Shown: in pieces, positions 5,851 to 39,145 of the stretch
Layout of the letters: every line of letters starts with the position of its first letter
Numbering within the stretch: position 1 is the stretch's first letter
Assembly: GCA_002269645.1 (NCBI GenBank)
Contig: NIVC01000070.1
Location: forward strand, 868,001-932,000
From: Macrostomum lignano
Taxonomy: Eukaryota
Reading direction: 5' to 3'
Length of the DNA stretch: 64,000 bases
The notes under the pieces: model-generated
Seen by the model: the letters and a program-made list of their open reading frames with translations, nothing else
Database searches by the model: none
Told to the model about the DNA's origin: nothing
Program-made: the position numbers and the translations under genes

Positions 5851-8800
5851 GCGCTTGGACTTTGAAGGACATTTCGGGGTAAGCAGCTTAATTCAACTAA
5901 TTTTTTATGTATTTGATTTTCGCGGCGTTTTATGTGAAAGAAAAGAAAAAAATTATCTCAAATGCATGTGTCCAATAGGAGCACAATGGAAAAGAGGCCC
6001 GCCCTGTACCACATATCGATCGAGCTGGGGTGGGTGAGAGGGACCATGTTTCTTATGGGGGGAAATGCCCGCTTTTTTCTTCACTTTACTGGTCTAGATA
6101 TTCTATATGGTCTGTGGTTAGGCCCCCCTATTCGAAGTCTTCGCCTGGACCCCCATCAAGTTGCCGTTATCCCACCAATGGCTTTAAGCTCCTCTCTCAT
6201 CTATGACTTATGAGTTGTCCAATAGACATTCTAATTCAAATTTAATTTAGTTTGTCATACCAAATTTTTTATCAGTTGTTATAGTCGACTGAATTCTAGT
6301 ACGATCAGAACTAGACAGCGGAGGCTCTTCATATTGCTTGTTCTGGTTCTAGAACCAGAACCAATTTGTAAAGTATAACTTTTTGTCTCCTAAACTAGAG
6401 GGATATCAGTGCTTTAAAATTGTGATTATTGAATGGCAATAGCCAAGAAGAAATTGAGAAATCGTGCAAAGTGAGGCTGTTAAGGCAGTCAAACATTCAA
6501 CAAAGTTAAATAGTTATACTGCTTTTTTTCTTGGAAATCCGAACCGATTCTGGTTCGAGAATCGATGCCGTGAAGAGGCTCAGGTTTTTCCTCTTCCCAA
6601 TCCGCTTCGCCCTATTCTAACCCACACTAGATGCACACGACCCGACTATTAGTTAAATGGTAAGCAGACAAATTGGTTTGCATTTTCGTCTGCCGCACTA
6701 TATTCACTTCTTGAGGGCAGACGAACTGGAGGCAGACAAATTGACTTGGGTAGGGCCTAGCCGTAAGGGGGCCTAACTCAACCTGACAAATTAGGCCTAG
6801 TTAGCTAGAAATTAGGGCCTAATCAACACAACATGAGATAATTTTTTAAGAGAAAGCTTACGCTTAGGCCTACTGCAGTTACTGCAGTTAGTTTGTTACT
6901 GCAGTAGGCCCTAGCCTACTGCTAATCAGTTGTATAGACAATACTATAGATAGGCCTAAAGAAATTTATAATTTCCTCATAATTTATGCAACCAATGGTC
7001 TGTTCGTATCTATCTATCTAGGTAGGTAGGTATGAAATTGATTTCAGAAAAAAACAGCTCAACCAATTTGATTCAAACTTGTACCATTCAATCAGAAATT
7101 TCTCTATGACAAAGAGAAAAGCAAAAATCAACATTAAATATGCCCCTATTAATGTTGATATTTAACATTATTTAATATTTTTTGTGGAGATTGTGGAGAG
7201 AAAAGCAAAAATCAATATTAATTTAGTTACTTAATGTTGATTTTTGCCTTTCTCTTTATTCTACCTGCCAAGCAAGCAACTTTACTTGTTCTCTATGACA
7301 GAGACAGTACATGCATTATGTTTAAGAAATTGCTCAAAGCTAAAGGTATTAATACATATTTGAAAAACATGCTTTTTTCAAAGGTTAAGCAGCTCTTTCA
7401 ACTTAAAATGCATTGTAAGAATCATAAGAATGCTAGAAAAAAAACTGACAAGTTGAATTCTGATTCTAAAATAGGGCCTAGATTATATCATACTAGGACA
7501 TAGGCCTAGCCTTTTTATTTATTATATCTGTACTAGCTGAATTTTGAGACTAAATTGAATTGCATCATAATATTAAAAACCTAGCATGGAAGCATACTGC
7601 ATAGCATAAGACTTGATTTATCTTGCGTAACTACATTGGGCTATCCTATAGAATCATTTGTTAAATTATTTTCTTAACATGAATAACTTGCATCTAATTC
7701 TTGAGTTTAGAACAATGTAAGAGAGTAACATTGAATGACAATGTAAACTAGATGCCAAGTTAGTTTGTTGTTAGTCATATTTGATCTTTATGTACTTTAC
7801 TCATTTAGAGAGAGTAAGCCTAATAGTAGATGGCCTAATACAAAAAGTACTAGGCAAATACTAGGCAAAATTAATGCAAACATGCATTTGAATTTGCACT
7901 GTGACATGTCCATAATTCCAAAAATGATGTCTGTTGGCACTTGGCATGCCACTAACAATAAAGTGACATGGCATGGCTTGAACTGCAGTTCAAGAAAATA
8001 TGTCTATAGCCAAAATCATTGCATCAACTCTGTGCATTTTAAGGGAGTGAAGTATTAGAGGAGTAAAGTATTATTACTATATGTCTATGTGACTAATAAC
8101 AAACTAGGCCCCTAACTTGTCATCTAGTTTATGTTTTTTCATTTTAATTTTACTTTCTTACATTGTTCTAAACTCCAAAGTTAAGATGCATTGCATGCAA
8201 ATTATTCACATTGAAAAATAATTTTTAACGAATGATTCTGCAAGATAGCCCCATATTGCTAACTTAAATAGGTTGATGCCAATGGTTGTTTTGTCTGCTA
8301 CCAATTCATCTGCTACTTTTTTTTCTGCAAAATATATAATATCTAGTCATTTCATTAGCCACAAATAGTAATTTTTTAATAAGTGTAGTTATGTCAATTG
8401 TTGTCATTTTTTGAGATAGTGATTATAAGATAAGTGATCAAGACATCAAGATATTTCTTAGTAATAATGACTTGAATAAGTAATTTCTGAATATTTTTAT
8501 TTATATTTAATAAACTTTGCAATGAAATGAATCAATGCATTTTCATCATAATATCATATGATACCATGCTGTCTATCTCCTAATTGTAATTAGTCTAGTT
8601 AGAATTATTTTACTTATTAGAATTTGTTTACTTAAATTATAAATCTTATTTCTACATAGATTTAAAGCTTATATAAGAATAATCAAATTTCTCAGAAAAA
8701 TTGTGAAAAACAAAATAAAAAATACAATGATTACATCTAATTCTAAATCTAAAAATTACTTACAAAGTCTATTTATTAAAAATAAACTATATATTTTTTC

Positions 8801-9084
8801 TAGCCATTTATAAAGCCTTTTTTGCTGCTTATTATTAAAAAGTTGTTTTGTCTACTAGCAGACTAAATGACTGCATACCCTTTAATAGAGACTCTAACTG
8901 ACTAGCCTCAGAGATTGATTATATCATCACTGACTTGGTTTGAATATTGAATTATAAATGCTACAAATTCATTTATAAATTCAAAGAAAGCTAACTTAGA
9001 TGTGAAAAGACTGAACTGCTAATGCAGCAACCTGGGTTTTCATCTTAGTAGTGTAATTTTTTTATTGAATGTTTTTTATCATGA

Positions 9085-9420
9085 ATTATTGCACTTAATA
9101 AGCCTAAAATTATTGCACTTGATAAGCCTAGGATTATTCTAACCAATGATTATTACACTTGATAAAACTAGGATTATTCTACTTGATAAACCAATGATTA
9201 TTACATTTGATAAACTTAGTATTATTCCACTTGAGGATTATTGCACTAGCTTAGAAAGGGACTATTGTATACCTGAGACATCAACTTTTGCACTTGATAT
9301 ACCAAAGATTATTGCACTTGATAACCTAAAGGTTATTGCACTATATGAGCATTGATTTTTGCACTTGATAAACCAAAGATTATTGCACTTGATAACCTAA
9401 GGATTATTGCACTATAGCTG
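9085..9420. repeat. Degenerate tandem repeat with ATTATTGCACTTGATAA core
   Basis: Core recurs about ten times with variable spacing (roughly 22-28 bp). Confidence 0.7.
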
Positions 9421-9559
9421 AAAAGATTATTATTGTGCTGGCAGAATAAAGATTATTGTGCTGGTTAAAAAAAAGATTGTTGTGCTAGCTAAGACATGGA
9501 TTATTGCACAACCTGAGAAAGCAATCAGTGTATTAGCAGAGGGAATATTTGTACTAGCT

Positions 9560-12500
9560 ACTTGCTGTCTATTGGATGCTTGCTATCTGGGGGATTCTGG
9601 CTATTGTATCTGGGGGATGCTTGCTATTTTATCTAAGGGTGCTTACTATTGTATTTGGAGGGTGTTTACTATCTGGGGGATACTTGCTCTCAAAGGGAAA
9701 GGGTACTTGCTATTTGGATAAGGGGGGTACTAGCTACATAAATCTACTTATACATGTATGGGATTCTTTCTATCCAGGTATGCTTGGTATTTAGGAATGT
9801 TTGATATCTGCAAGATGCTTGCTATCTGCAGGATGCTTGCTATCTAGAGGATGCTTGTTATCCGCAGGATGCTTGTTATTTGCAGGATGCTTGTTATTTG
9901 CAGGATGCTTGTTATCTGCAGGTTGCTTGTTATCTGCAGGATGCTTGTTATCTGCAGGTTGCTTGTTATCTGCAGGATGCTTGTTATCTGCAGGTTGCTT
10001 GTTATCTGCAGGTTGCTTGTTATCTGCAGGATGCTTGTTATCTGCAGGTTGCTTGTTATCTGCAGGTTGCTTGTTATTTGCAAGATGCTTGTTATCTTCA
10101 GGATGCTTGTTATCTGCAGGATGCTTGTTATCTGCAGGATGCTTGCTATCTACAAGATGCTTGCTATCTGGGGAGATGCTTGCTATCTGGGTGGATGCTT
10201 GCCATCTGGGTGGATGCTTGCCATCTGGGTGAATGCTTGCTATCTGGGTGGATGCTCGTTTTCTGTGGAGATGCTTGCTATCTGGGTGGATGCTTGTTAT
10301 CTGGGGAGATTCTTGCTATCTGCAGGTTGCTTGTTATTTGCAGGATGCTTGTTATCTGCAGGTTGCTTGTTATCTGCAGGTTGCTTGTTATCTGCAGGAT
10401 GCTTGTTATCTGCAGGTTGCTTGCTATCTGCAGGATGCTTGTTATCTGCAGGATGCTTGCTATCTGCAGGATGCTTGTTATCTGCAGGATGCTTGCTATT
10501 GCTATCCGCAGGATGCTTGTTATCTGCAGGATGCTTGTTATCTGCAGGATGCTTGCTATCTGGGGAGATGCTTGCTATCTGCAGGATGCTTGTTATCTGC
10601 AGGATGCTTGCTATCTGCAGGATGCTTGCTATTTGCAAGATGCTTGTTATCTGCAGGATGCTTGTTATCTGCAGGTTGCTTGCTATCTGCAGGATGCTTG
10701 TTATCTGCAGGATGCTTGCTATTGCTATCCGCAGGATGCTTGTTATCTGCAGGATGCTTGTTATCTGCAGGATGCTTGTTATCTGCAGGTTGCTTGTTAT
10801 CTGCAGGTTGCTTGTTATCTGCAGGTTGCTTGTTATCTGCAGGTTGCTTGTTATCTGCAGGTTGCTTGTTATCTGCAAGATGCTTGTTATTTGCAAGATG
10901 CTTGTTATCTTCAGGATGCTTGTTATCTGCAAGATGCTTGTTATTTGCAAGATGCTTGTTATCTTCAGGATGCTTGTTATCTGCAGGATGCTTGCTATCT
11001 ACAAGATGCTTGCTATCTGGGGAGATGCTTGCTATCTGGGTGGATGCTTGCCATCTGGGTGGATGCTTGCCATCTGGGTGGATGCTTGCTATCTGGGTGG
11101 ATGCTCGTTTTCTGTGGAGATGCTTGCTATCTGGGTGGATGCTTGTTATCTGGGGAGATTCTTGCTATCTGCAGGTTGCTTGTTATTTGCAGGATGCTTG
11201 TTATCTGCAGATTGCTTGTTATCTGCAGGTTGCTTGTTATCTGCAGGATGCTTGTTATCTGCAGGTTGCTTGCTATCTGCAGGATGCTTGTTATCTGCAG
11301 GATGCTTGCTATCTGCAGGATGCTTGTTATCTGCAGGATGCTTGCTATTGCTATCCGCAGGATGCTTGTTATCTGCAGGATGCTTGTTATCTGCAGGATG
11401 CTTGCTATCTGGGGAGATGCTTGCTATCTGCAGGATGCTTGTTATCTGCAGGATGCTTGCTATCTGCAGGATGCTTGTTATCTGCAGGATGCTTGCTATT
11501 GCTATCCGCAGGATGCTTGTTATCTGCAGGATGCTTGTTATCTGCAGGTTGCTTGCTATCTGCAGGTTGCTTGTTATCTGCAGGTTGCTTGTTATTTGCA
11601 GGATGCTTGTTATCTGCAGGTTGCTTGTTATCTGCAGGTTGCTTGTTATCTGCAGGATGCTTGTTATCTGCAGGTTGCTTGCTATCTGCAGGATGCTTGT
11701 TATCTGCAGGATGCTTGCTATCTACAAGATGCTTGCTATCTGGGGAGATGCTTGCTATCTGGGTGGATGCTTGCCATCTGGGTGGATGCTTGCCATCTGG
11801 GTGGATGCTTGCTATCTGGGTGGATGCTCGTTTTCTGGGGAGATGCTTGCTATCTGGGTGGATGCTTGTTATCTGGGAAGATTCTTGCTATCTGCAGGTT
11901 GCTTGTTATTTGCAGGTTGCTTGTTATTTGCAGGATGCTTGTTATCTGCAGGATGCTTGCTATTTGCAAGATGCTTGTTATCTGCAGGATGCTTGTTATC
12001 TGCAGGTTGCTTGTTATCTGCAAGATGCTTGTTATTTGCAAGATGCTTGTTATCTTCAGGATTCTTGTTATCTGCAGGATGCTTGTTATCTGCAGGATGC
12101 TTGTTATCTGCAGGATGCTTGCTATCTGCAGGATGCTTGTTATCTGCAGGATGCTTGCTATCTGCAGGTTGCTTGTTATCTGCAGGTTGCTTGTTATCTG
12201 CAGGATGCTTGTTATCTGCAGGTTGCTTGCTATCTGCAGGATGCTTGTTATCTGCAGGATGCTTGTTATCTGCAGGATGCTTGTTATCTACAGGATGCTT
12301 GCTATCTAGGGAGATGCTTGCTATCTGGTGGATGCTTGCTATCTAGGTGGATGCTTGCTATCTTGGGAGATGCTTGCTATCTTGGGAGATGCTTGCTATC
12401 TGGGTGGATACTTGTTATCTGGGGAGATGCTTGCTATCTGGGTGGATGCTTGTTATCTGGGGAGATGCTTGCTTTCTGGGGAGATTCTTGCTATCTGGGG

Positions 12501-12690
12501 AGATGCTTGTTATCTGGGGAGATGCTATCTGGGGAGATGCTTGCTATCAGGAGATGCTTGCTATCTGCAGTTGCTTACTCTTGGAGATGGGTGCTTGCTA
12601 TCTGGGGGATACTTGCTATCTGGAGGATATACTTGCTATGTGGGGAGTGCTTGCTGTCTGAGGGGATGCTTGCTGTCTTGGAGATGTTTT
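9560..12690. repeat. 18-bp minisatellite (GATGCTTGTTATCTGCAG)n, about 3 kb, with higher-order structure
   Basis: Homogeneous centre and degenerate edges; marker variants recur at 10150, 10999 and 11722. Confidence 0.97.
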
Positions 12691-14096
12691 CTATTTAGGG
12701 GGATTGTCTTTTATCTTTGTGAAAGCTTTATTTTGTTGTCTTTTTGTTAATTTTATAAAGAAAGATTCGTAGCAAATATCTTTGTCCATGACAATTTTAC
12801 TCAAATATAAAGTGATTTATAAAACTAAAGAAGGAATTGGTTCTGAAGAAAATATGATCTTTGAATTGTTTTCCATGACAAAGTTTTGCTCTTTGCTTAT
12901 TGGGCACCCCAATAGGGGCACTAGATTGCTAGTTAGTATCTGTAACTAAGCCTAGCCTAGCTAATATAATAATAGATTATTATTAATGTTGTAACACTTT
13001 TTGGCTTTGCAACTATAGACCTTATGCTATAGTCTATAGTCTAAATTTGAATATATATTACTATTCAAATATTAACATAGGGCCTATGTAGTCTAGGCGC
13101 CTAGTTTATTTATAAGATCAAAAATATATAGATATCAATTCAATTCAAAATCAATTAGACAAATTTTTTATATTAGGAAGTTCTTTAGGCTTTGAATATA
13201 TATGGTATCATCCTAAAAAGGCTTTTTTAAATATTGATTTTATATTTATTGAATAGATTAGTAGAATATTTTGTGCTCCATAGCCTACTTAAGAAGCTAA
13301 CAAATGCACGTTAAAACCAGTTTTTTTCTACTGGCACAAAAAATAAGATGTGAAATTTAAGGTCCAATTTCAAGATGAAATATGGAAATCAGGATATTAA
13401 ATAGCATTCCTATTGCTTAAAAAACGAAGTGTGTTTTTTATAATACTAGTACTATGATACAAACTTGCATCCAATGTCTAATTTAAGGATGCAATTTTGA
13501 AAGTCAAGATGCTATAGCATCCCTTTCACAAAAAAATAAACCTAGGTCAAAACAAAGTGTTGATATTGGCTAAGGCCTAACTAATTGCATGCCAATATAT
13601 GCCAAAAAACTAAAATTGTGTATTAGAATAACCAAAAAGGTGTTTTTAGGTAAAAATTTCTCTTAAAAGTTTAATCAAGTGGTAGGCCTAGATTATTTTT
13701 TCTATGCTAGACTTTCTAGACCTAAATACTTGAATATGCTTCATGATATACGCTTTCTAACTTGAGCTAGGGGTGTGGTTTAATCTGAATGATAGTGAAT
13801 TTGGGCCTGATAAAGTCAATCTAGTCATATCACTGCAGGCCATATTAGGCTGGAGAGGAGATGGAATCAAGGAGAGAGATGAGATGAGAGTGAGGATAAG
13901 AGGGGAGAAGAGAGCTGAGAATAGAGATTAACTTTTAGCGGGCCAGATTAGGATTGTGAAGTTTTAAAAGACCCGAGGACCAGTTAGAGAGGCTTCGTGG
14001 GTTGGAGTTTTTAGAATTTGAATCAGCAGCCTTCAAAAGCCTCATCAGCATAGCCATATCTAAAACTGTTGCCCCCTGTCGCGGCCGTGATTGCAG

Positions 14097-17000
14097 ATGT
14101 CGGACGCGTCGCTTGAGCAGTCGCTAAAGCTGCTCCGTGAAGAGGCTGGCATGGTGTGCCACAGCGCCAGCAGTCACGTGATCATCGTATTTGGCGCCTC
14201 TGGCGATCTAGCCAAGAAGAAGATCTATCCAACTCTGTGGTGGCTGTTCAGAGACAAACTGCTGCCATCCAACACTCACTTTGTTGGCTACTCGCGGTCT
14301 AATCTCACCGTAGACAATCTCCGATCCAATGCCATGCCCTATTTAAACGCCAAGGACTCCGAATGGACTCAACTGGACGAGTTCTTCAAGCGCAATTCAT
14401 ACGTTCAAGGCAGTTACGACAAGCCGGAAGATTTTATCCGTTTAAACAAATTTATTGTGGATAATTTCTCGGCTTGCTCGAATCGATTGTTTTACCTGGC
14501 TACACCGCCGTCTCAGTTCATCAGCGTAGCAACTAATTTGAAGGCTCACTGCACCGCTGAATCGGACGGCCTGTGGAATCGGCTGATTGTTGAAAAGCCG
14601 TTTGGCAAAGATCTAGATTCTAGCGAAGTGCTGGCCAAGCACCTGTCCAGCTTGTTCAGCGAGGACCAGATCTATCGCATTGATCACTACCTGGGCAAGG
14701 AGATGGTGCAGAATGTTGTCGTGCTGAGATTTGCTAACCGGGTGTTCAGCCCGTTGTGGAATCGCGACAATATCGCCAATGTTGTCGTCACATTCAAAGA
14801 GAACTTCGGCACCGAAGGTCGAGGCGGCTACTTTGACGAGTTTGGCATCATTAGAGACGTGATGCAGAATCATCTGCTGCAGATTCTGTGCCTCATCGCT
14901 ATGGAACGGCCAATTTCTATGGAGGCTAATGATATTCGCGATGAGAAGGTATTGATTTTGTTAGTCAAGTTGAAGTCTACAGAATGAAGATAGGTTGGGC
15001 CATAGACAACTTGCAAATTTCTAATTGTGACTAAAGTCGAAACCTGCGGCGTAGCAGGGCTTGCCATAGACTATCGCTACCACTTTACTACTCTAAGTCC
15101 TTCCAGAAAATCCTTCCAGCTGAGAAGGGAGTGTTTTGCGATGAGAGTCGTCTCCAAAATCTCCCACAAGAGAATCGTCTCCAAAATCTCCCAAGAGAAT
15201 CAATCACCTCCGAAATCTCCCAGAGAATCGTCTCCAAAATCTCCCCCAAGAGAATCGTCTCCAAAATCTCCCCAGCGAATCGCCTCCAAAATCTCCCGGA
15301 GAATCGCCCTTTTAAACTAAACCTTCACCTCTCCCTACAGGTAAAAGTGCTTCGCTGCATGCGTCCCCTGAGCCTGGACGATGTTGTTGTCGGGCAGTAC
15401 GTGGCGGACCCGGAGAACGGCAAGCCGGGCTACCTGGACGATCCCACTGTGCCTGCCGGGTCCATAACGCCCACTTACGCTGTGGCCGCTCTGTATGTTG
15501 ATAACGAGCGTTGGCAGGTAAGAATGATTGACAATTTTGATCTTAAGTTAGAATATGTGTGAGATCTCCTGTTAGAATCTGTGTGAGACCTCATGTTGTA
15601 ATCTGTGTGAGATCTCATGTTAGAATATGTGTGAGATCTCATGTTGTAATCTGTGTGAGATCTCCTGTTAGAATCTGTGTGAGACCTCATGTTAGAATCC
15701 GTATGAGATCTCCTGTTAGAATCTGTGTGAGACCTCATGTTAGGATCTGTGTGTGCGATCTCATGTGTGAGACCTCATGTTAGAATCCGTATGAGATATT
15801 CATTATCAGAGTCTGGCTTTGTTAGAATTAGTGCGATACTTTAAGCCCAAATCTAACTGTGAGATCTCATGTCTCACCCTGGCTGAGATTTGAGTCGTCG
15901 TATCACTTTTCAAAAGCATTTCGGTTGCACAGCTGTGCAGTTAACCTGTGTGACGCAGTCTCTTAAAGAGTGGAATTAATATTTAATGCTCAACACAGAC
16001 TTAAAGTTACTGTAAGATAAGATTAAGGTTAAAGGCCAGTCCAAAACGAAGGAATATTCAATGTTATTGTACAATTCACATTCGCCAGAAAGTCAGTGAG
16101 AACTTGAGGTTTATCGTATGCTCGTATGATAGGAAATAACCTTTTTCTGAAAAATACTTGCTTGCCCTAGATTTTCGTAAGCTAAAATAATCATTGTATA
16201 TCTGCACCCAGATATTGATAACTGGATATTCTATCAGATTCCTAACTTTGTCTGATTCTGTCCTGTATCTGTCCTTTGTGCAGACACAAATGCCTGTCTG
16301 CATTTGTGTCTGCCTGTCTGCATTTGTGTCTGCCTGTCTGCATTTGTGTCTGCCTGTCTGCATTTGTGTCTGCCTGTCTGTATTTGTGTCTGCCTGTCTG
16401 TATTTGTGTCTGCCTGTCTGTATTTGTGTCTGCCTGTCTGTATTTGTGTCTGCCTGTCTGTATTTGTGTCTGCCTGTCTGTATTTGTGTCTGCCTGTCTG
16501 TATTTGTGTCTGCCTGTCTGTATTTGTGTCTGTCTGTCTGTATTTGTGTCTGCCTGTCTGTATTTGTGTCTGTCTGTCTGTATTTGTGTCTGCCTGTCTG
16601 TATTTGTGTCTGTCTGTCTGTATTTGTGTCTGCCTGTCTGTATTTGTGTCTGTCTGTCTGCATTTGCGTCTGCCTGTCTGTATTTGTGTCTGCCTGTCTG
16701 TATTTGTGTCTGCCTGTCTGTATTTGTGTCTGCCTGTCTGCATTTGTGTCTGTCTGTCTGTATTTGTGTCTGCCTGTCTGTATTTGTGTCTGTCTGTCTG
16801 CATTTGCGTCTGCCTGTCTGTATTTGTGTCTGCCTGTCTGTATTTGTGTCTGCCTGTCTGTATTTGTGTCTGCCTGTCTGCATTTGTGTCTGCCTGTCTG
16901 TATTTGTGTCTGCCTGTCTGTATTTTGCCCGACTGTCTTCCTGTCTGCCTCCATGTCTTAGTGGTCTTTGTCTGGTATGTGCTGTGCTTGCCACACGTAC

Positions 17001-17588
17001 AGCTGTTGATAACTACGCCCGTGCCTGCTGTATCCATCTGTCCCACTTTCTTTCCCTAAACTCCAGGGCGTCCCATTCATAGTCCGGGCTGGCAAAGCGC
17101 TCAACGAGAAGAAGTGCGAAGTCCGCATCCAGTTCAAAGACGTGATAGCGGACATCCTGCCTAGCGGAGCCGTCCACCGCAACGAGCTGGTGCTGCGCGT
17201 GCAACCGAACGAAGCGGTGTACATGAAGCTCATGACCAAGCGGCCCGGCATGGGCTTCGGCGCCGAGGAGACTGAGCTCGACCTCACCTACAACCGCCGA
17301 TTCACCGATCTGAAATTGCCGGACGCCTACGAGCGCCTGCTGTTGGACGTCCTGGTTGGGTCGCAGATTAATTTTGTCCGAACGGACGAATTGCGCGAAG
17401 CCTGGCGCGTCTTCACTCCGGCGTTGCACGCGCTCGAATCGCAGCGGGTGGCGCCGCATCCCTACCCGTACGGTGTGCGCAACGGGCCGCCGCAGTCGGA
17501 CGAGTTCATGCGCCGGCTGGGGTTCACCTTCAGCGGGCAGTATTTCTACCCGCATGGGGGCAGCGGCGCTGGGCCAGTCAAACAGTGA
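14097..17588 (+). CDS. G6PD: Glucose-6-phosphate 1-dehydrogenase, about 516 aa
   Basis: Exons 14097-14948, 15341-15517, 17067-17588, both introns phase 0 and GT-AG. Motifs [64 protein letters not shown]. Confidence 0.98.
15140..15305. repeat. About 21-bp tandem repeat (AGAATCGTCTCCAAAATCTCCC-like) in G6PD intron 1
   Basis: Roughly seven imperfect units. Confidence 0.85.
15545..15800. repeat. 24-bp tandem repeat (GAGATCTCATGTTAGAATCTGTGT) in G6PD intron 2
   Basis: About ten units; contains the palindrome TGAGATCTCA. Confidence 0.9.
16280..16925. repeat. 20-bp minisatellite (TATTTGTGTCTGCCTGTCTG)n in G6PD intron 2
   Basis: About 32 near-identical units. Confidence 0.97.
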
Positions 17589-17664
17589 GTCAGTGAGTGA
17601 GCATTCTGTGTGCTGTTGTATTGATGGGGATCTTGCAAGTTGGGCTGTGTTAGCTGACAGCTCA

Positions 17665-18560
17665 CCAACCTACTCAAATCCTCACACTGTCCCTACTCAA
17701 CTCACCACCCTACTCAGATCCTCACACTGACCCTACTCAACTCACCACCCTACTCAGATCCTCACACTGACCCGTCACCCACTACCCTACTCAAATCCTC
17801 ACACTGACCCACCACCCTACTCAAATCCTCATACTGAGCCACCACCCTACTCAGATCCTCACACTGACCCACCACCCTACTCAGATCCTCACACTGACCC
17901 ACCACCCTACTCAAATCCTCATACTGAGCCACCACCCTACTCAGATCCTCACACTGACCCACTACCCTACTCAAATCCTCACACTGACCCACCACCCTAC
18001 TCAGATCCTCACACTGACCCACCACCCTACTCAAATCCTCATACTGAGCCACCACCCTACTCAGATCCTCACACTGACCCACCACCCTACTCAAATCCTC
18101 AAACTGACCCACCACCCTACTCAAATCCTCACACTGACCCACTACCCTACTCAAATCCTCACACTGACCCACTACCCTACTCAAATCCTCACACTGACCC
18201 ACCGCCCTACCCACATCCTCACACTGACCCACCACCCTACTCAAATCCTCACACTGACCCGTCACCCTACTTAAATCCTCACACTGACCCGTCACCCTAC
18301 TCAAATCCTCACACTGACCCACCGCCCTACCCACATCCTCACTGACCCACCACCCTACTCAAATCCTCACACTGACCCGTCACCCTACTTAAATCCTCAC
18401 ACTGACCCGTCACCCTACTCAAATCCTCACACTGACCCACCACCCTACTCAATTCCTCACTGACCCGTCACCCTACTTAAATCCTCACACTAACCCGTCT
18501 CACACTGACCCACCACCCTACCCAGATCCTCACACTGACCCGTCCCCCACTACCCTACTA
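17665..18560. repeat. 30-bp minisatellite (TCAAATCCTCACACTGACCCACCACCCTAC)n downstream of the G6PD stop
   Basis: About 29 units. Confidence 0.97.
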
Positions 18561-19334
18561 AAACTTCAAGTTAACCCATAATCTACCCAAAACAATAATT
18601 GCAGGCCCAGTGACAGAGCTGCTGATTCAAAGCCGCCCAGTAAGCTGTGTAAGCCTGTCTAACTCGAGTATGGTATGCAAATCCGAGTTCTCAATATTCG
18701 AAGCATGTTGCTTTATAATGTTTTCTTTTACTTTCATTGACCCTTTCAGAAGTGGCCTGACAAACTCAACAGAGGCATCAATTGAATTCTAGAAAAAAAC
18801 ATTTTGACTTTTTCATTCATCAATGTAAATTAGTATATCATATATTTCGAATTTGTATTAATTATTTAGCTAGTTCTAGTAAAAACAAAGTTCTGTTGAA
18901 ACAATTTTATATTGATAGTAGTTTACCAAAATTATTTCGACCAAATTTTAAGGTTAATCCATGATATAAGACTTTGTTTTATTAGAGTAGTTGATAGATA
19001 ATTACTTTTCATACACCGGTAAAATGCGGCCAAGACAATGGAGCTCAGCACTCTGAATGTACATAAATAATATTCAGTAAATTTCTAGCTAATATTTATG
19101 TTGTACTAGGGCAGTACCTGTGTCTGACATTACTATATTTTTAGCTGTTTTTGATGTTGTATTGTTCTTGTATTCTGATTCAAAATTTTATTCTATTTTA
19201 TTTGTTTGCTTTCTATCAATAAATTATCGCAGACTAGAATATTTTTTATTTCTTACGATTGTAAATTTGTACGACTTGTTCACTTAACCATTGCTTAAAC
19301 AACACTAGAATTTGCAGAATCAGTTAGTCTTGTG

Positions 19335-19700
19335 CTCGGATCCTCAGTTGCTGAGCCACCAGCCTCCCAGATCCTCAGTTGCTAGGTCACTAGCAGCCTC
19401 CCAGATCCTCAGTTGCTAGGTCCAGCCTCCCAGATCCAGCTCAGTTGCTGGTCCAGCCTCCCAGATCCTCAGTTGCTGGGCCAGCCTCCCAGATCCTCAG
19501 TTGCTAGGCCACCAGCCTCCCAGATCCTCAGTTGCTGGGCCAGCCTCCCAGATCCTCAGTTGCTGGGCCACCAGCCTCCCAGATCCTCAGTTGCTGGGCC
19601 AGCCTCCCAGATCCTCAGTTGCTAGGCCACCAGCCTCCCAGATCCTCAGTTGCTGGGCCACCGCCCTCTCAGATCCTCAGTTGCTGGGCCAGCCTCCCAA
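19335..19700. repeat. 28/31-bp minisatellite (CAGTTGCTGGGCCAGCCTCCCAGATCCT)n, array 1
   Basis: About 12 units; same unit and orientation as the array at 26447-27235. Confidence 0.95.
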
Positions 19701-19763
19701 CTCCCCACTCCATTCATACACAGCAACCTGTTCCTCACCGCAGCCACAATAATAACCAGCACT

Positions 19764-20678
19764 ATGGAAGTCATCGTTCTTCGAGCCAACGATGGTCGCG
19801 TAATTGAGAGCTTCACCGGCGTCTCAGCGGACAGCACCATCGACGACCTGAAGCAGTTATTCACCCAGCGCCAGCCGAAGTACTACCCGGACAGGCAGAG
19901 CTTCCGCAAAGAGAAAACCGCCCGATCCTTGCCGGGAAATTCTAAACTGGGCGAGCTGGCCGGCTCTGCCAAGTCTCTGTCGGTTTATTTCAAAGATCTG
20001 GGTCCCCAGATTGGCTGGACAACCGTGTTTGTTGCCGAGTACACCGGTCCGCTAATTGTTTACCTGCTGTTCTACCTGAGGCCGGCCATTGTCTATGGGC
20101 CGGAGGCTGGCAAAGCTCCCATGCACTGGATAGTGAAGGCCGCGGCCGCCTGCTGGATCGGGCACTATGCCAAGCGCCTGCTGGAGACGGTGTTCGTGCA
20201 CCGCTTCTCTCACGGCACCATGCCATGGCGCAATCTGTTCAAAAACTGCTCCTACTATTGGGGCTTCGCCGCCTTCGTTGCCTACTTTGTTAACCATCCG
20301 CTGTACACCGCGCCAGCCGACTCGCAGGCAATTGCCGCTCTGGTCACTTTTGTGTTCTGCCAGCTGGGCAACCTCAGCTGCCATGTGGCGTTGAGGAACC
20401 TCCGACCGCCGGGTACGCGAGTGCGTAAAATTCCCAGGCCCACTGCTAATCCTTTCACCTGGCTGTTCGGCCTGGTCTCCTGCCCGAATTACACCTACGA
20501 GTTTGGGTCTTGGCTATCGTTCACGGTTGCTACCCAGTGCCTGCCGGCTGGCCTGTTCACCCTGGCCGGCGCCTACCAGATGACCGTCTGGGCGCTCGGC
20601 AAGCACCGGAACTACCGGCGCGAATTTGCCTCGGATTATCCAAGGGGCCGGCGCGCCATCTTCCCGTTCGTGCTGTAG
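19764..20678 (+). CDS. TECR: Very-long-chain trans-2,3-enoyl-CoA reductase, intronless, 304 aa
   Basis: N-terminal ubiquitin-like segment (TIDDLKQLF...YYPDRQSFR), then KDLGPQIGWTTVFVAEYTGPL, HYAKRLLETVFVHRFSHGTMP, NLFKNCSYYWGF, VSCPNYTYE, C-terminal YPRGRRAIFPFVL. ATG 19764 taken as start; the longer ORF from 19650 is repeat-derived. Confidence 0.96.
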   Translation: MEVIVLRANDGRVIESFTGVSADSTIDDLKQLFTQRQPKYYPDRQSFRKEKTARSLPGNSKLGELAGSAKSLSVYFKDLGPQIGWTTVFVAEYTGPLIVYLLFYLRPAIVYGPEAGKAPMHWIVKAAAACWIGHYAKRLLETVFVHRFSHGTMPWRNLFKNCSYYWGFAAFVAYFVNHPLYTAPADSQAIAALVTFVFCQLGNLSCHVALRNLRPPGTRVRKIPRPTANPFTWLFGLVSCPNYTYEFGSWLSFTVATQCLPAGLFTLAGAYQMTVWALGKHRNYRREFASDYPRGRRAIFPFVL

Positions 20679-20859
20679 GGGGCTGCGGCAACTCTGGGAT
20701 TGTCCGTTTTCTCTATTAATTTAGCGCAGTTTTTTAAATAGACTAGTAGTCCATGTAGCATTCCTTTGATTGAAACTGTACGCTTGTTGTTGAGTAGGTT
20801 GAAAGTCAATTAACTAGGGAAGCAGTCTATGTCTATCCCGTTTGTTTTTATAGTTTTTT

Positions 20860-20869
20860 AATAAATAAA
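20860..20869 (+). terminator. Overlapping AATAAA polyadenylation signals after TECR
   Basis: AATAAATAAA about 180 nt after the stop codon, preceded by a T-rich tract. Confidence 0.5.
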
Positions 20870-21104
20870 TATATCTCTCTCTCTCCAACCAAAGCCAGTC
20901 AAAACAGGCAAAATAATATAATATTGAATTGGTTCAAACTTTGAATGATTTAACTAAATATATATCTAGCTATAGACCTCCTCATGACGTTGGAACTGAT
21001 GCCACTGTTGTCTTTTAATTTCATCATTTTAACAAATTGTTAATATTTAAGTTAGAGTTCAGCAGATTTCTCGGTTTAGTAAAGGTTGCGGGTCTTATCA
21101 TGAG

Positions 21105-22825
21105 ATTTCGAGTCTCACCATAAGATTTGAGGCCTCATCATGAGCTTTCTGGTCTCATGATGAGATTTAAGGTCTCATCATGAGATTTTTTGTCTCATCA
21201 TAAGATTGCGGGTCTCATCATGAGATTGCGGGTCTCATCATGAGATTTCAGGTCTCATCCCGAGATTTCATGTCTCATCATGAGATTTCAGGTCTCATCT
21301 TGAGATTTCATGTCTCATCATGAGATTTCAGGTCTCATCTTGAGATTTCAGGTCTCATCATGAGATTTCATGTCTCATCATGAGATTTCAGGTCTCATCT
21401 TGAGATTTCATGTCTCATAATAAGATTGCGGGTCTCATCATGAGATTTCATGTCTCATCATGAGATTTCAGGTCTCATCTTGAGATTTCATGTCTCATCA
21501 TAAGATTGCGGGTCTCATCATGAGATTGCGGGTCTCATCATGAGATTGCGGGTCTCATCATGAGATTTCAGGTCTCATCTCGAGATTTCATGTCTCATCA
21601 TGAGATTTCAGGTCTCATCCCGAGATTCCAGGTCTCATCATAGGATTGCAGGTCTCATCATAGGATTGCAGGTCTCATCTTGAGATTTCATGTCTCATCG
21701 TGAGATTTCATGTCTCATCATGAGATTTCAGGTCTTATCTTGAGATTTCAGGTCTCATCATGAGATTGAGATTTCATGTCTCATCATGAGATTTCAGGTC
21801 TCATCTTGAGATTTCATGTCTCATAATAAGATTGCGGGTCTCATCATGAGATTTCATGTCTCATCATGAGATTTCAGGTCTCATCATGAGATTTCAGATC
21901 TCATCTTGAGATTTCATGTCTCATCATAAGATTGCGGGTCTCATCATGAGATTGCGGGTCTCATCATGAGATTTCAGGTCTCATCCCGAGATTTCATGTC
22001 TCATCATGAGATTTCAGGTCTCATCTTGAGATTTCATGTCTCATCATGAGATTTCAGGTCTCATCTTGAGATTTCATGTCTCATTATGAGATTTCATGTC
22101 TCATCATGAGATTTCATGTCTCATCATAAGATTGCGGGTCTCATCATGAGATTGCGGGTCTCATCATAGGATTGCAGGTCTCATCTTGAAAGTTCATGTC
22201 TCATCATGAGATTTCAGGTCTCATCATTAGATTTCAGATCTCATCATGAGATTTCATGTCTCATCATGAGATTTCATGTCTCATCATGAGATTTCATGTC
22301 TCATCATGAGATTTCAGGTCTCATCTTGAGATTTCATGTCTCATAATAAGATTGCGGGTCTCATCATGAGATTTCATGTCTCATCATGAGATTTCAGGTC
22401 TCATCATGAGATTTCAGATCTCATCTTGAGATTTCATGTCTCATCATAAGATTGCGGGTCTCATCATGAGATTGCGGGTCTCATCATGAGATTGCGGGTC
22501 TCATCATGAGATTTCAGGTCTCATCCCGAGATTTCATGTCTCATCATGAGATTCAGGTCTCATCTTGAGATTTCATGTCTCATCATGAGATTTCAGGTCT
22601 CATCTTGAGATTTCATGTCTCATTATGAGATTTCATGTCTCATCATGAGATTTCATGTCTCATCATAAGATTGCGGGTCTCATCATGAGATTGCGGGTCT
22701 CATCATAGGATTGCAGGTCTCATCTTGAAAGTTCATGTCTCATCATGAGATTTCAGGTCTCATCATTAGATTTCAGATCTCATCATGAGATTTCATGTCT
22801 CATCATGAGATTTCATGTCTCATCA
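21105..22825. repeat. 20-bp minisatellite (TCATCATGAGATTTCAGGTC)n between TECR and UBR7
   Basis: About 85 units with variant spacers (TTTCAGG, TTTCATG, TTGCGGG). Confidence 0.97.
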
Positions 22826-22891
22826 TAAGTTTGCCGGTCTTATTAAGTCTCAACTATCAAAGCAATTTCATCCCGACAGCCAGCAGTTGTC

Positions 22892-25498
22892 ATGTCCGAC
22901 CAGCATCAGCAGCAGCAGCCGTCGGAGTCCGGAGGAGCCGGTCACAAGCGGCCCCGACCAGACGATGACAGCGAAGAATTAGAAATAGCGGTGGACGCTG
23001 ACCCGGAGGCTGGGGAAGATGACGCCGCCGATGAGCTTCTCCGCATGGACGATCTGTTTGGCGAGCACGAGGCTCTGTACGGGTCCTCGTCTGAGACGGA
23101 GTGCACCTACAGCAGCGGCTACATGGCCAGACAGCCCGTGTACGCCTGTCAAACCTGCCAGACAGACGGCCCGGCCGCTATCTGCTACGGTTGCGCTAAG
23201 CGCTGTCACGAAGGTGTGCTGCTGGTTGATTATTTAATTACTGTTCTCAGCCGCTCTCGCTGGCATTTGGTTCTACAAGGCAGCTACGAGTATTGCGCGG
23301 CGCATCTGAAGTCTGCGTACGGCTGTTCAGTCCAAGGCTATTTTTGTTTATAGAGGCAGGGGGGTTGTGTGCACCCTGGCGCACTTTAAGCGACATAGGC
23401 ACACAACCGGCGAGAGGCATTACTGCCCATTCCGCCGACTCCCCTGAGCAGGCATACAAGCGCGCGGATACGTACGCAGGCACACACACAGGAGTGTACA
23501 GCGGCCCTAACTTTATATTATCGTTAGGCATGTACACTTCACTGCGCCTTGGGGGGTTGGCTCTCAAGGCCGTTAATTGCACAAGCAGAGCCAAGCCGAG
23601 ATTCCAATTCAGCCCCAAATTAATGTGACTGCACTTGGAATCGAGCCTGGGTCGCTGGCACACCAGAGCAGCTGCGCTACCGCTGGGCTACGGCCCCCCC
23701 CCCTGGGGTCCCCAGCTAATGCTGGCACCCATTTTACAGCTGGGGGAACTGAAGCTCAAGGAGCACAAAATGTTCCAGTGGGATCGGGAATCGAACCCCC
23801 GGCCTTCACGTTGTGAATCCGACGCTTTAACCACTGGGCTGCAACCCCCTACTTGGCTACGATCCCATGCCCGTTAAAACGTTACCGTCAAATCGCTAAA
23901 GAATCGCTAAAGATTCATTGCTAACATCTCACTAGTGACTATGGGCGACTCTTAGTAACCTCATGAGCAGGGGGGTTGTAGCTTAGTGATTAGAGCGTCG
24001 GACTTGCGGCTGAAAGGTCGGGGGTTCGAATCTCTACCCACTCTTGAAACAATTTGTGTCCTTAAGCAAGACACTTAACTCTGCACTGCTTCAGTTCACC
24101 CAGCTGTACAATGGGTGCCAGCATTGGCTGGGGTAATTGAGGATGTGTGTGGCGACCCTATTTATAATAACCTCAAGCTTCTGCTCTCACCCCTCCATTC
24201 GTCAAGGCCACGACCTGCTCGAGCTCTACTCGAAGCGTCAGCTGGCCTGCGACTGCGGCAACGCCAAGTTCGATGCGGTCCGCGACCCAACTAGCGGAGA
24301 GAAGTTCGTGTGCCAGTTGTGCGAGTTCAAAACCATCAACTACGATAATAAATATAATCAGAATTTTGCCGGTCTGTACTGCATCTGCTCCAGGCCCTAT
24401 CCGGATCCTGACGGCCAGCTCGCTAACGAGGAGATGCTGCAGTGTACTGTCTGCGAGGACTGGTACCACTCCTGTCATCTGACCGTGCCCGAGGCTGACT
24501 GCCTGCGTGTCGAGTCCTACGAAGAGCTGGTGTGTCAGCTGTGCTGCGCTAGGCTGCCTTACCTGCGGCACTATGCCCTGCCTGATACTGCAGCTGCATC
24601 GTCTGACATCCCGGCTGGATCTTCTGACACTAAGGCTGCATCGTCTGACATCCCGGCTGGATCTTCTGACACCCCGGCTGGAGCATCTGACACCCCGGCT
24701 GGAGCATCTGACACCAAGGCTGCATCATCTGACACCCCGGCTGGATCATCTGACACCCCGGCTGGAGCGTCTGACACCCTAGCTGGAACTTCTAACACTA
24801 AGGATGGATCGTCTGACACTAAGACTGGATTGTCTGACACCCCAGCTGGATCGTCTGAAACCCCAGCTGGATCGTCTGACACCACAGCTGGATCGTCTGA
24901 CACCACAGCTGGAACTTCTGACACTAAGGATGGATCGTCTTACACTAAGGATGGATCGTCTGACACTAAGGCTGGATCGTCTGACGCTTCGAGTAGCTCG
25001 CCAGCAACCAAGCAGCCTGGCGCTCAACGCCGCTGCACTCTGCCAGCCGCTGCCGACTCCTCGTCCGACGCCGCCGCCACCGCGCCCCGCGCCCTTCTGA
25101 TGCCTTCCGGTTGGCGCCGGCGCCTCTGCCGCTGCGCCGACTGTGAATCGGCTTACGCCCGCGACAATGTCGCCTTCCTGACCGATCCCGCCGACTCCCT
25201 GGCCGAGTTCGAGCTGGCCAACCGTCGGACAGCCGAGGAGCAGAGCCGGCCGGAGAACGTGCTGCGCAGTCTGGCCAGCGCCGGCGTGCCGCACGTCTCC
25301 GTCCAGCTGGTGGCCAGCGCCATCGGCGACTTCCGGCGGGGCCTGTCGCGCGCGATGGCCAGCGTGTTGGCCGACAAGAACTGCTCGGACGGACAGCCGG
25401 CCGTCATCACCAGGGATGACGCTGATCGAATCCTGGCTATGATGGCGCCGGTGCTGGCTAAACGAGCTCGGTTCCAGCCTCCCGACACCTGCCGCTGA
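22892..25498 (+). CDS. UBR7: UBR-box/PHD E3 ubiquitin ligase UBR7, about 537 aa
   Basis: Exons 22892-23213 and 24207-25498, phase-1 GT-AG intron. UBR box CTYSSGYMARQPVYACQTC..ICYGCAKRCHE|GHDLLELYSKRQLACDCGN; NKYNQNFAGLYCICSRPYPDPD; PHD QCTVCEDWYHSCHL..ELVCQLC; C-terminal WRRRLCRCADC and FLTDPADS. Confidence 0.95.
23283..23698 (-). mobile_element. tRNA-derived SINE, family A (head, body and 3' tail) in the UBR7 intron
   Basis: Minus strand starts GGGGCCGTAGCCCAGCGGTAGCG (A box) ... GGCTCGATTCC (B box); body aligns over about 300 nt with the + strand copy at 28335-28658; tail matches 35995-36090. Confidence 0.8.
23700..23850 (-). mobile_element. tRNA-derived CORE-like SINE, family B
   Basis: Minus strand GGGGGTTGCAGCCCAGTGGTTAAAGCGTCGG..GGTTCGATTCCC followed by CTTCAGTTCCCCCAGCTGTAAAATGGGTGCCAGC; central part partly deleted relative to the copy at 23971. 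Confidence 0.8.
23971..24160 (+). mobile_element. tRNA-derived CORE-like SINE, family B
   Basis: A box TAGCTTAGTGATTAG, B box GGTTCGAATC, then GTGTCCTTAAGCAAGACACTTAAC..CAGCTGTACAATGGG, which resembles the CORE-SINE domain. Confidence 0.82.
24598..24985 (+). repeat. 21-bp coding tandem repeat in UBR7 (SSDTPAG-like heptads)
   Basis: 18 heptads in frame inside exon 2. Confidence 0.93.
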
Positions 25499-25790: not shown

Positions 25791-26446
25791 ATTGTGACTG
25801 TCCGACAGCCAACTGTTACGATGGAAGCATCTTTGGTACGCAGTGAGAGGTCAGTGAAGCAAGTCTTCGCCTATTGGAACGGTTTTTGTTTCATTTTTCA
25901 CTTTTTTTTCAATTCTGAGACCGAAAATCAGTCTTACCTGCGTTTATGTAATCAACTACATAATTATTCAAGCACTTTTTTATATGTAACTTATTATTTT
26001 ATATCCTAAAAAGCTTACTATTTGTCATGGCACCGTGTTTTTCGTTATTAATTACCACCGTTCGTAATGTCATAGTAGTAGTGCTGTGGTGTATCATTTT
26101 TCAATACAATATCGGCCATCACCCACCGTATGATAAATACCAAATTAACTTTTTTAAATCTCATTTTCAATGTCGTTTAGCAGCCTTTCACGTACGAACT
26201 GTGGAAAAAATATATAAAAATATATTGCATTCAAGCACACTTATTTTTGTGTTTATTATAGCAGTCAAAAAGCACCCAGTTGATTTTTTGTTATTTGTTG
26301 GTAAAATTCGGATTCAAACAGCTTTAATAACTGCTTAAACTGATGGGTTGCCGTTGGCGCCTCAGCAGCACACCCTGGGCACACGCTCACACGGGGTGTA
26401 CAGCACGACTCTCATCGTATTGGTATTCGATAATTGTTAATCGCTC

Positions 26447-27235
26447 TCAGTTGCTGGGCCAGCCTCCCTGATCATCAGTTGCTGGGCCAGCCTCCCAGAT
26501 CCTCAGTTGCTGGGCCAGCCTCCCTGATCCTCAGTTGCTGGACCAGCCTCCCAGATCCTCAGTTGCTGGGCCAGCCTCCCTGATCCTCAGTTGCTGGGCC
26601 AGCCTCCCAGATTCTCAGTTGCTGGGCCAGCCTCCCAGAGTGTCAGTTGCTGGGCCAGCTTCCCAGATCCTCAGTTGCTGGGCCAGCCTCTCAGATCCTC
26701 AGTTGCTGGGCCAGCCTCTCAGATCCTCAGTTGCTGGGCCAGCCTCTCAGATCCTCAGTTGCTGGGCCAGCCTTCCAGATCCTCAGTTGCTGGGCCAGCC
26801 TCCCTGATCCTCAGTTGCTGGGCCAGCTTCCCAGATTCCCAGTTGCTGGGCCAGCCTCCCAGATCCTCAGTTGCTGGTCCAGCCTCCCAGAGTGTCAGTT
26901 GCTGGGCCAGCCTCCTAAATCCTCAGTTGCTGGGATACCGCCCTCCCAGATCCTCAGTTGCTGGGCCAGCCTCCCTGATCCTCAGTTGCTGGGCCAGCTT
27001 CCCAGATTCCCAGTTGCTGGGCCAGCCTCCCAGATCCTCAGTTGCTGGTCCAGCCTCCCAGAGTGTCAGTTGCTGGGCCAGCCTCCTAGATCCTCAGTTG
27101 CTGGGATACCGCCCTCCCAGATCCTCAGTTGCTGGGCCAGCTTCCCAGATCCCCAGTTGCTGGGATACCGCCCTCCCAGATTCTCATTTGCTAGGTCAGC
27201 CTCTTAGATCCTCAGTTTCTGGACCACCATCCTAG
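26447..27235. repeat. 28/31-bp minisatellite (CAGTTGCTGGGCCAGCCTCCCAGATCCT)n, array 2
   Basis: About 27 units; same family and orientation as 19335-19700. Confidence 0.96.
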
Positions 27236-27545
27236 ATCCATCCTGGAATACAGGTACGAGTACCTCACGCTTGTCGCAGTTAAGGTCAAACAACAAAATT
27301 GGTTCTTGCTTCAAATATGCTCAGTCTGATTTGTTTGTCGCTCATTACGACCAGCAAGAATACCCGCAAAATGCACACCGAACCAAAGCAAAGACAAAAG
27401 GCCAATTGATGCGGTTTGTTTGAAATTCAGCAGCGCCTGGCTCAGCTGCCACCTTAATAATCGCGATTGTCTTCAAATTGAGTTTTCTATATTTTAATTC
27501 ACAAGAGAAACATAATCTTTTAAGGTGCAATGCAGAGAAACCTCC

Positions 27546-37323: not shown

Positions 37324-39145
37324 GTTGAATTTTCTCTGCCTGTAGGAAACTGGCTATGATTTTGTTTTGGATGATTAGGTGTAAAGTATTCCGTTTTGAA
37401 ACCATTTACTTATAAACGGGCTAGCCAGCATTGCGTGCTAGATTTTCTAATTTGATATTTGACAAAAACTTTGGCACAGCAAAGCGGTCTGTGCTAAACC
37501 ACAGTTAAAAATTCCTGCAATTTCAGCTGCCATCAGCCTGAGGCAGTATTGACCGGACGTGGCACTCTGAGATGGTAGATCGCGACAAGAATAATCTGCA
37601 ACGACACGTAAAGGCCAGAAAGCACGGGCACCAGATCCGATTGGATAAACAATAAGCACCGGCCCACGTGTTTACCTTGGCCTAGGAGTAATGGGAGTAA
37701 TAGGAGTAATGGGAGTAATAGGAGTAAGAGGAGTAAGAGGACACTCCGTCTCAGTTTCCAACCTCTTCAGTCAGTGAGCCGAGCGCTTTCATTTTGTCTG
37801 GTAATTCTTTTTCGCGCGGCTAATGCTAAACTTAGGCATATACAGGTCCATGCAGGCTCACGGAGCTCCCCCCCCCGGGACAGAGCAGACCAGAATTCAT
37901 TACTGCTGCATAAACAGTTGGTTAAAAATCCACTGGGGAAATGTTTGCTTATGCACTTTTATGCGCTGAAAAGAAGCCTTTACTATAGAAGCGCTTATGA
38001 CTCTGAACGCTTTTGCATAGCGTCTTTGCACTTAAAAATAGTGTTCAGCAGAAGGCTCCTAAACCTTTGTCTCTACACAAATTTTTTCTCTTAAATTCCT
38101 TTTTGAGACAGAGAATGGTGTTGCCCCCTCCCACATCATCTACTCTGACTTGCTGATTAAGAAGTAAGGCTTAAATTCTACGACAATGGCTTGGGAAAGC
38201 CAAGGCAACGCTTGAAGCGCCACTCATATTCTGACAAAGCAGCACAAGGCGTGGGCTATTGCTCCACCGGAATGCAAAAAGCTAAGCTGACAAGTCTAAT
38301 AGAAGCAAAAAATGTACCACGTTCCCTTTCCCAGCGGCCCAAACCTGCCTGCCAACTCACCTGACGACCTCAAACCGCATGCGTGGGCAGCAGCGCTCTT
38401 CCTTCCTACAGTTGCAGACTGACCAACCAATGAAAACTTCGCTGATAAAGCTAACAGGCTGAACGTTAGAACTTGGCTTTCTCTAGAGGAGCAAAAGGAA
38501 ATAAAAGAGAGAGAGAGAAGCGCAGAAACGCAGGCGGGCACAATTTCATCGCCTATAATGTTGCATTGTGAGCAAGATGATTTGGTCAGTTGCTTGCAGC
38601 CCTGGACATCGGTAAGTTCGCCCAACTGTTTATTAAAACTTTTGGTATTAAAAAACAGCCCTATGCACAACATGGCGTACACAAGGACTACTTAAGTAAC
38701 ATATATATCTACTTAAGTTGTCCTTGGGCGTACACTTGCACATGCACTGTGCCTGCAGCCTTGACTTTACAAAGGAATTTGCTTGAGATGGTAAAGTGAC
38801 GAAAGAGAGAGAGTTAAGTGCACATACACACGAGTGAACGTGAAGGAATACCATTGTTTAGCAATTTGACGATCATTATTCACATTTTTAATGCAGAACA
38901 ATCCATTACTACAAACAATGCATTGTCTGTAGGATCGGCAAACAGAAAAACAATGCAAAGAATCAGCGGTCGCAGCACGTGACAACGATTTGTCTATGGC
39001 TCGCGCCTACCGGCGCTCGCCAGACAATCGTTGTCACGCACTGGGACCACTGATTATTTATCCATTGTTGGATGAGTCATCGTGCAGCAATGCGCCTAAT
39101 GCTTTCCCAGTGAGATTTTACCACAGACAATGCTTGCTCAATAGG

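Follow-up and report, generated by a model that had tools for sequence, protein, structure and literature searches.

The genes for G6PD, the very-long-chain enoyl-CoA reductase TECR and a UBR7-like UBR-box protein lie head to tail in Macrostomum lignano, a free-living flatworm, and we conclude that they probably constitute a three-gene polycistronic unit, or operon, that is resolved by spliced-leader (SL) trans-splicing. They are found in a stretch of 64,000 nucleotides of contig NIVC01000070.1 (positions 868,001 to 932,000, forward strand; assembly Mlig_3_7, GCA_002269645.1), referred to here as the window; a window position is the record position minus 868000. Window 4097-28760 is 100% identical to record positions 872097-896760 over the 24.7 kb compared. 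M. lignano uses a single 35-nt SL ending in AUG, with the sequence CGGTCTCTTACTGCGAAGACTCAATTTATTGCATG, and its operons have been published (PMC8629364). In that work an operon consists of adjacent SL genes on the same strand whose repeat-subtracted distance is below 1 kb, with a mode near 100 bp; the SL-acceptor motif is [T/C]TNCAG, approximately 15% of genes reside in operons, and three-gene operons account for 18% of those described (PMC8629364). A preliminary description of this DNA had proposed the G6PD-TECR-UBR7 operon from the letters alone. That proposal was right in substance, as judged by the shared annotation prefix, the spacers, an SL-bearing ortholog and a chimeric gene model, whereas it needed revision in detail, namely at the 3′ end of G6PD, at the acceptor of UBR7 and at the AG of the TECR acceptor. 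The features of the locus are as follows, a slash marking a splice junction.

13399-14096, + strand: unique sequence upstream of G6PD, taken as outron plus promoter (the promoter at a presumed position), ending in the acceptor TTGCAG at 14091-14096
14097-18760, + strand: G6PD (PAA91876.1, BOX15_Mlig009613g1); coding exons 14097-14948, 15341-15517, 17067-17584, 18605-18639 and 18750-18760
19218-19223, + strand: putative G6PD poly(A) signal AATAAA, its position shared by all three assembly copies
19339-19691, no strand: minisatellite with a 31/59-bp period found by Tandem Repeats Finder (TRF), occupying most of the G6PD-TECR spacer
19718-19743, + strand: TECR acceptor region, with ACACAG/C (19723/19724) used by a chimeric gene model and CCGCAG/C (19743/19744) as the likely SL site
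19764-20678, + strand: TECR, 304 aa in one coding exon; GenBank gives 19758-20678, marked partial
20860-20865, + strand: putative TECR poly(A) signal AATAAA, approximately 180 nt past the stop codon and kept in all three copies
21091-22826, no strand: 20-bp minisatellite of 86.6 copies (TRF), occupying the TECR-UBR7 spacer; 27-30 copies in the paralogs
22877-22886, + strand: cluster of three candidate UBR7 acceptors, ACAG/CCAG/CAG/, just past which the paralog partial coding sequences start
22892-25498, + strand: UBR7-like UBR-box protein (PAA91878.1, BOX15_Mlig009613g3); exons 22892-23213 and 24207-25498, the stop codon ending at 25498

Annotation, spacers and transcripts

The only GenBank gene calls in window 4097-28760 are G6PD, TECR and UBR7, all on the + strand. 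No opposite-strand gene intervenes between them, and the same order is found in two other copies of the locus in the assembly, so that the adjacent, same-strand arrangement of M. lignano SL operons (Ustyantsev & Berezikov 2021) is present here. The placement of the three genes on one strand in the preliminary description held when motif coordinates and Pfam identities were checked (G6PD_N and G6PD_C in G6PD, TECR_N and Steroid_dh in TECR, zf-UBR in UBR7). The transcriptional units of M. lignano were built from RNA-seq data, many being precursors with several SL sites, and TBONE splits these units into genes at experimentally mapped peaks of SL and poly(A) reads; a locus-tag prefix stands for one transcriptional unit or for a 95% cluster of units (PMC5730564). 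The suffix gN can serve to count duplicate loci as well. On this contig G6PD is BOX15_Mlig009613g1 and UBR7 is BOX15_Mlig009613g3, and the two further copies are tagged Mlig005301g1 (G6PD), g2 (TECR) and g3 (UBR7), and Mlig010645g1 and g3. Since the three genes are unrelated in sequence, their common prefix indicates that one assembled unit spans them. Judged from these names, a single RNA-seq-assembled precursor therefore covers the genes, as in the operons of Wudarski et al. 2017. The locus is thus already annotated as a unit, Mlig009613.g1 to g3, and is probably an ordinary member of the published M. lignano operon type.

The distances between the genes are consistent with this assignment. 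Each spacer was measured from approximately 20 nt past the AATAAA, the poly(A) sites being estimated from these hexamers, to the downstream acceptor, with and without masking of repeats by TRF. In the three copies the lengths are:

G6PD-TECR spacer: raw 500, 436 and 531 nt; TRF-masked 147, 146 and 146 nt
TECR-UBR7 spacer: raw 2001, 855 and 821 nt; TRF-masked 265, 262 and 268 nt

After subtraction of repeats, both spacers are shorter than 1 kb in all three copies and lie close to the published mode of approximately 100 nt. The raw spacers of the window (0.5 and 2.0 kb) look long because minisatellites have expanded inside them, the unique DNA amounting to 147 and 265 nt; inflation of operon spacers by repeats was likewise noted by the authors who described M. 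lignano operons (PMC8629364). The hexamers at 19218 and 20860 had been pointed out previously, and each is indeed the only AATAAA or ATTAAA of its spacer (for the first, from the G6PD stop codon to the TECR ATG). Minisatellites had also been assigned to the spacers. This is true of the arrays at 19339-19691 and 21091-22826, but a 30-bp array at 17661-18496 is intronic, because G6PD has further exons at 18605-18639 and 18750-18760.

Two observations on gene models and transcripts bear on the unit. First, the UniProt model A0A1I8H512 (833 aa) joins the donor of G6PD exon 3 (17584/17585) in frame to 19723/19724, 41 nt ahead of the TECR ATG. The chimeric junction (P0247, ...PVK/H/NLF...) maps to 17584/19724, and in the window, too, the frame stays open across it; if the model is transcript-based, it implies an RNA that extends across both G6PD and TECR. 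Second, the closest TECR found outside M. lignano is an 82% identical ortholog of a relative, present in the Logan RNA assemblies SRR30276812 and SRR30276804. The TECR contigs from these assemblies (approximately 1.1 kb) open with 26 and 23 nt that match the 3′ portion of the M. lignano SL exactly, and the junction lies 17 nt ahead of the ATG. By contrast with this outside evidence, on which the case rests, the acceptor motifs alone are not significant, since a CAG with a pyrimidine-biased tract occurs no more than 20 nt upstream of approximately 15% of all ATGs in the window.

Together, these data suggest the following model. RNA polymerase II would start somewhere in the unique DNA ahead of 14097, a stretch of approximately 0.7-1.5 kb, and read through G6PD, TECR and UBR7. 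The single 35-nt SL would be joined at 14096/14097 for G6PD, at 19743/19744 for TECR and at 22886/22887, or a neighbouring AG, for UBR7, sites to which indirect evidence points. The two upstream mRNAs would be cleaved and polyadenylated after the AATAAA at 19218 and 20860, as conservation of these hexamers suggests, and the unit would stop at UBR7, facing a convergent astacin gene.

Gene boundaries and splice acceptors

The spliced G6PD exons translate exactly to the GenBank protein PAA91876.1 (P0121; 530 aa, 100% identity). The acceptor GTGATTGCAG ends at 14096 and is followed directly by the ATG at 14097, as had been described. Its characterization as pyrimidine-rich stands in part: TTGCAG fits [T/C]TNCAG, but only 6 of the 12 positions ahead of the CAG are pyrimidines. 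The older UniProt models A0A1I8I0D0 and A0A1I8H512 begin with MMSD, whereas the genome reads CAG/ATG. The extra methionine is explained if the terminal AUG of the SL was joined at 14096/14097, which would yield AUG AUG UCG. We also looked for other sources of this start. A cis-spliced exon of the 5′ untranslated region (UTR) is less likely than SL addition, the lone GT[AG]AG in the 1.5 kb upstream being at 13890 within GA-rich low-complexity DNA, and an ATG/GTRAG donor that could supply the MM start is absent nearby, one being found at 6657, 7.4 kb away. The best G6PD match outside NCBI (P0124, 65% identity) comes from an unrelated sample without SL context and was not used.

At its other end, G6PD had been thought to finish coding at 17588. 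This was wrong, as two further small exons follow and the last ends at 18760. The 3′ ends of G6PD are in fact alternative (17585-18760): the model of the window removes the minisatellite intron, adds the two tiny exons and ends ...PPKVA, the paralog model reads past the exon 4 donor and ends ...PPSKLCKPV, and one UniProt isoform omits exon 4 and ends ...QSGLTNSTEASIEF.

The unique sequence 13399-14096 shares 93-98% identity with the paralogous copy L005. Upstream of it, 7180-13399 is an insertion specific to the window, approximately 6 kb long here and approximately 0.7 kb in L005 (8218-8941). The insertion holds an 18-bp minisatellite at 9797-12570 (2.8 kb, approximately 151 copies) with strong GC and AT skew. 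There are no annotated genes in 4097-14096. A transposon remnant lies at 3892-4530 on the + strand: an open reading frame (ORF) there matches the TNP-like RNase H N-terminal domain of P-element/THAP9-type transposases (E = 4e-37), and it is 96% conserved in the paralogous copy. The final 8 nt of the SL (ATTGCATG) are also found at 13584-13591, 505 nt 5′ of the G6PD acceptor, where they are followed by CC with no GT donor, probably by chance. The SL sequence itself, and hence an SL RNA gene, was not found in the window at up to 3 mismatches.

For TECR, the acceptor CTGTTCCTCACCGCAG ends at 19743, with 20 nt between it and the ATG at 19764, in agreement with the preliminary description, but the AG of this acceptor is absent in the other two assembly copies. 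In the paralog, the GenBank TECR is a 5′-partial coding sequence (CDS) beginning TIITSTM, which is the first full codon past the equivalent of 19743/19744. The minisatellite family of 19339-19691 (unit approximately CTCAGTTGCTGGGCCAGCCTCCCAGATC) recurs at 26446-27239, 3′ of UBR7, so that it brackets TECR and UBR7. Within the TECR-UBR7 spacer, the 20-bp unit GGTCTCATCATGAGATTTCA of 21091-22826 contains the near-palindrome TCTCAT-C-ATGAGA, and a related motif, GAGATCTCATG, recurs in an array in a G6PD intron (15539-15766).

At UBR7, the acceptor that had been proposed, TTTCATCCCGACAG, does end at 22879, 12 nt ahead of the ATG at 22892, and an SL joined at 22879/22880 would place its AUG in frame. 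The site used is probably 7 nt further downstream, at 22886/22887: the partial CDSs of the UBR7 paralogs begin VMSD, which suggests that the 5′ end of the UBR7 mRNA is at approximately 22887, past the third AG of the cluster (CAG at 22884-86). In general, the 5′-partial GenBank CDSs of TECR and UBR7 start 2-16 nt past the acceptors and have no upstream exon. Within UBR7, 24593-24985 is a coding minisatellite with a 21-bp period (7 aa, AGSSDTP-like) of 18.7 copies, and the number of repeats differs among the copies of the locus. PAA91878.1 leaves out 7 and 49 residues within this minisatellite relative to the collinear reading frame; these apparent introns probably arise from aligning the transcript of a shorter allele. 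The UBR7 intron carries an inverted pair of tRNA-like elements resembling short interspersed nuclear elements (23710-23849 and 23971-24133), with arms of 46 nt at 93% and 69 nt at 74% complementarity, and neither ARAGORN nor Rfam calls a tRNA there or gives a match anywhere in the window.

In the paralogous copies UBR7 is followed by an opposite-strand astacin gene, and DNA homologous to it lies at approximately 28.4-31 kb in the window. The transcription unit would accordingly end at UBR7, and so be three genes long, because a convergent gene follows. Other genes of the window are all on the minus strand: a kringle-domain exon (818-1555), a phospholipase B-like gene with two large exons (34719-37353) and a rhodopsin-family G-protein-coupled receptor (47744-48790).

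Alternative readings of the locus

Several points weigh against a single operon. The TECR acceptor AG (19742-43) is TG in copies L005 and L006; where the window reads CCGCAG/CC (19728-19745), both L005 (15340-15362) and L006 (10304-10326) read CCCATG/CC, with no AG. The haplotype behind A0A1I8H512 has GCAG at this acceptor, which implies a third haplotype; the difference among the copies is either polymorphism or consensus error; alternative conserved AGs near the TECR start are at 19722-23 and 19758-59. The window's own partial GenBank CDSs begin at 19758 (TECR) and 22895 (UBR7), not immediately after an AG, and an exact search for the 304-aa TECR of the window in the RNA-seq assembly collection returned no contigs. 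The three copies of the locus are not independent evidence, because they are 90-97% identical. Furthermore, the chimeric model and those that start with MM may derive either from transcripts or from a predictor.

The main rival explanation is that G6PD, TECR and UBR7 are independent monocistronic genes, each driven by a promoter of its own within the spacer and losing an outron through SL addition, and that the shared unit is an artefact of read-through or of multi-mapped repeats. In assembling the transcriptional units, a read could map to as many as 1000 places (PMC5730564). Such heavy multi-mapping, together with spacers made of repeats that are transcribed elsewhere, makes artificial bridging of the spacers possible, and the minisatellite family at 26446-27239 shows that a spacer repeat does recur nearby. 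Because promoters in M. lignano function within 2 kb (PMC5730564), there could be room for them in raw spacers of 0.5 and 2.0 kb, and most SL-trans-spliced genes of this animal, approximately 60%, are not in operons (PMC8629364). Against this, the unique spacer DNA is just 147 and 265 nt and must also house a cleavage site and an acceptor, repeats, according to the authors, tend to break units up and not to join them (PMC8629364), and the chimeric G6PD-TECR splice needs a transcript across both genes. On balance we consider three independent genes unlikely and favor the operon.

The operon might also yield a translated, cis-spliced fusion mRNA consisting of the SL AUG, G6PD exons 1-3, a 14-residue linker and full-length TECR, 833 aa in all. 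Both haplotype types keep the fusion in frame, yet we regard its production as quite unlikely. If it is made, it would attach a source of NADPH to the cytosolic N-terminus of an NADPH-consuming reductase of the endoplasmic reticulum, and the choice between cis-splicing at 19723/19724 and trans-splicing at 19743/19744 would decide between one fusion and two proteins.

A further possibility is that the operon is partial, with G6PD and TECR co-transcribed and UBR7, behind the 1.7-kb minisatellite, transcribed separately. The sole splice-level link that we found is indeed between G6PD and TECR, and no spacer is longer or varies more than that between TECR and UBR7 (821-2001 nt). In addition, older UBR7 models are collinear with the genome from 14 nt upstream of 22879/22880 (ISSRQPAVVM) and therefore point to unspliced RNA. 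However, UBR7 has the same prefix as G6PD in three of three copies, and the repeat-adjusted TECR-UBR7 distance of 265 nt falls within the published limit. A two-gene unit is thus hardly probable, and the three-gene operon remains the preferred interpretation.

Finally, the preliminary description had paired G6PD and TECR within the operon as producer and consumer of NADPH, and, in addition to the operon reading, selection might favor their co-expression. NADPH is made by G6PD and used by TECR, and the in-frame chimeric model would fit such coupling, but we find it very improbable: an older, 71% identical G6PD paralog (Mlig022703g5) has no adjoining TECR or UBR7, G6PD of Echinococcus granulosus and TECR of the acoel Convolutriloba have unrelated neighbours, and UBR7 falls outside the NADPH theme. 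Metazoan SL operons do not, as a rule, group genes by pathway. Linkage of these genes is not seen across the lineages and paralogs compared, and since gene order is not kept elsewhere, the idea of functional coupling is without support.

Comparison with known operons

The locus adds little beyond confirmation, as single-SL operons have been published for M. lignano and these genes are already annotated as one unit. In a literature search, neither paper texts nor the supplements of PMC5816591 and PMC5730564 were found to name these locus tags. As a worked example it illustrates that minisatellites of 27 to 87 copies among assembly copies are tolerated while the unique intercistronic core stays constant at approximately 147 and 265 nt, and that older gene models, with their MM start and G6PD-TECR chimera, may betray SL addition and read-through transcription.

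With respect to the M. lignano operons described by Wudarski et al. 2017 (PMC5730564) and Ustyantsev & Berezikov 2021 (PMC8629364), nothing essential differs: repeat-adjusted spacers are 100-300 nt and raw ones are inflated by repeats in both, although the 1.7-kb intercistronic minisatellite is at the long end. In the parasitic flatworms Schistosoma and cestodes, polycistronic pre-mRNAs are resolved by SL addition, acceptors are common to cis- and trans-splicing, and chimeric models arise from polycistronic pre-mRNA (PMC12582326). Those chimeric models resemble the 833-aa G6PD-TECR model, whereas the SL sequences and the gene pairs differ; a G6PD, TECR or UBR7 operon is not mentioned in this 2025 survey of parasitic flatworm operons (PMC12582326).

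The SL2-type operons of Caenorhabditis elegans resemble this locus in having one upstream promoter and coupling of upstream 3′-end formation to downstream trans-splicing (both presumed here), short intercistronic regions (approximately 100 nt in C. elegans) and, mostly, two to three unrelated housekeeping genes. Nematodes use a dedicated SL2 for downstream genes. In M. lignano, by contrast, one and the same SL serves the first gene and those downstream (PMC8629364; PMC12582326), and kilobase minisatellites occupy the spacers here. The locus would therefore work like an SL2-type operon but belong to the M. lignano/flatworm type, not to the SL2 type.

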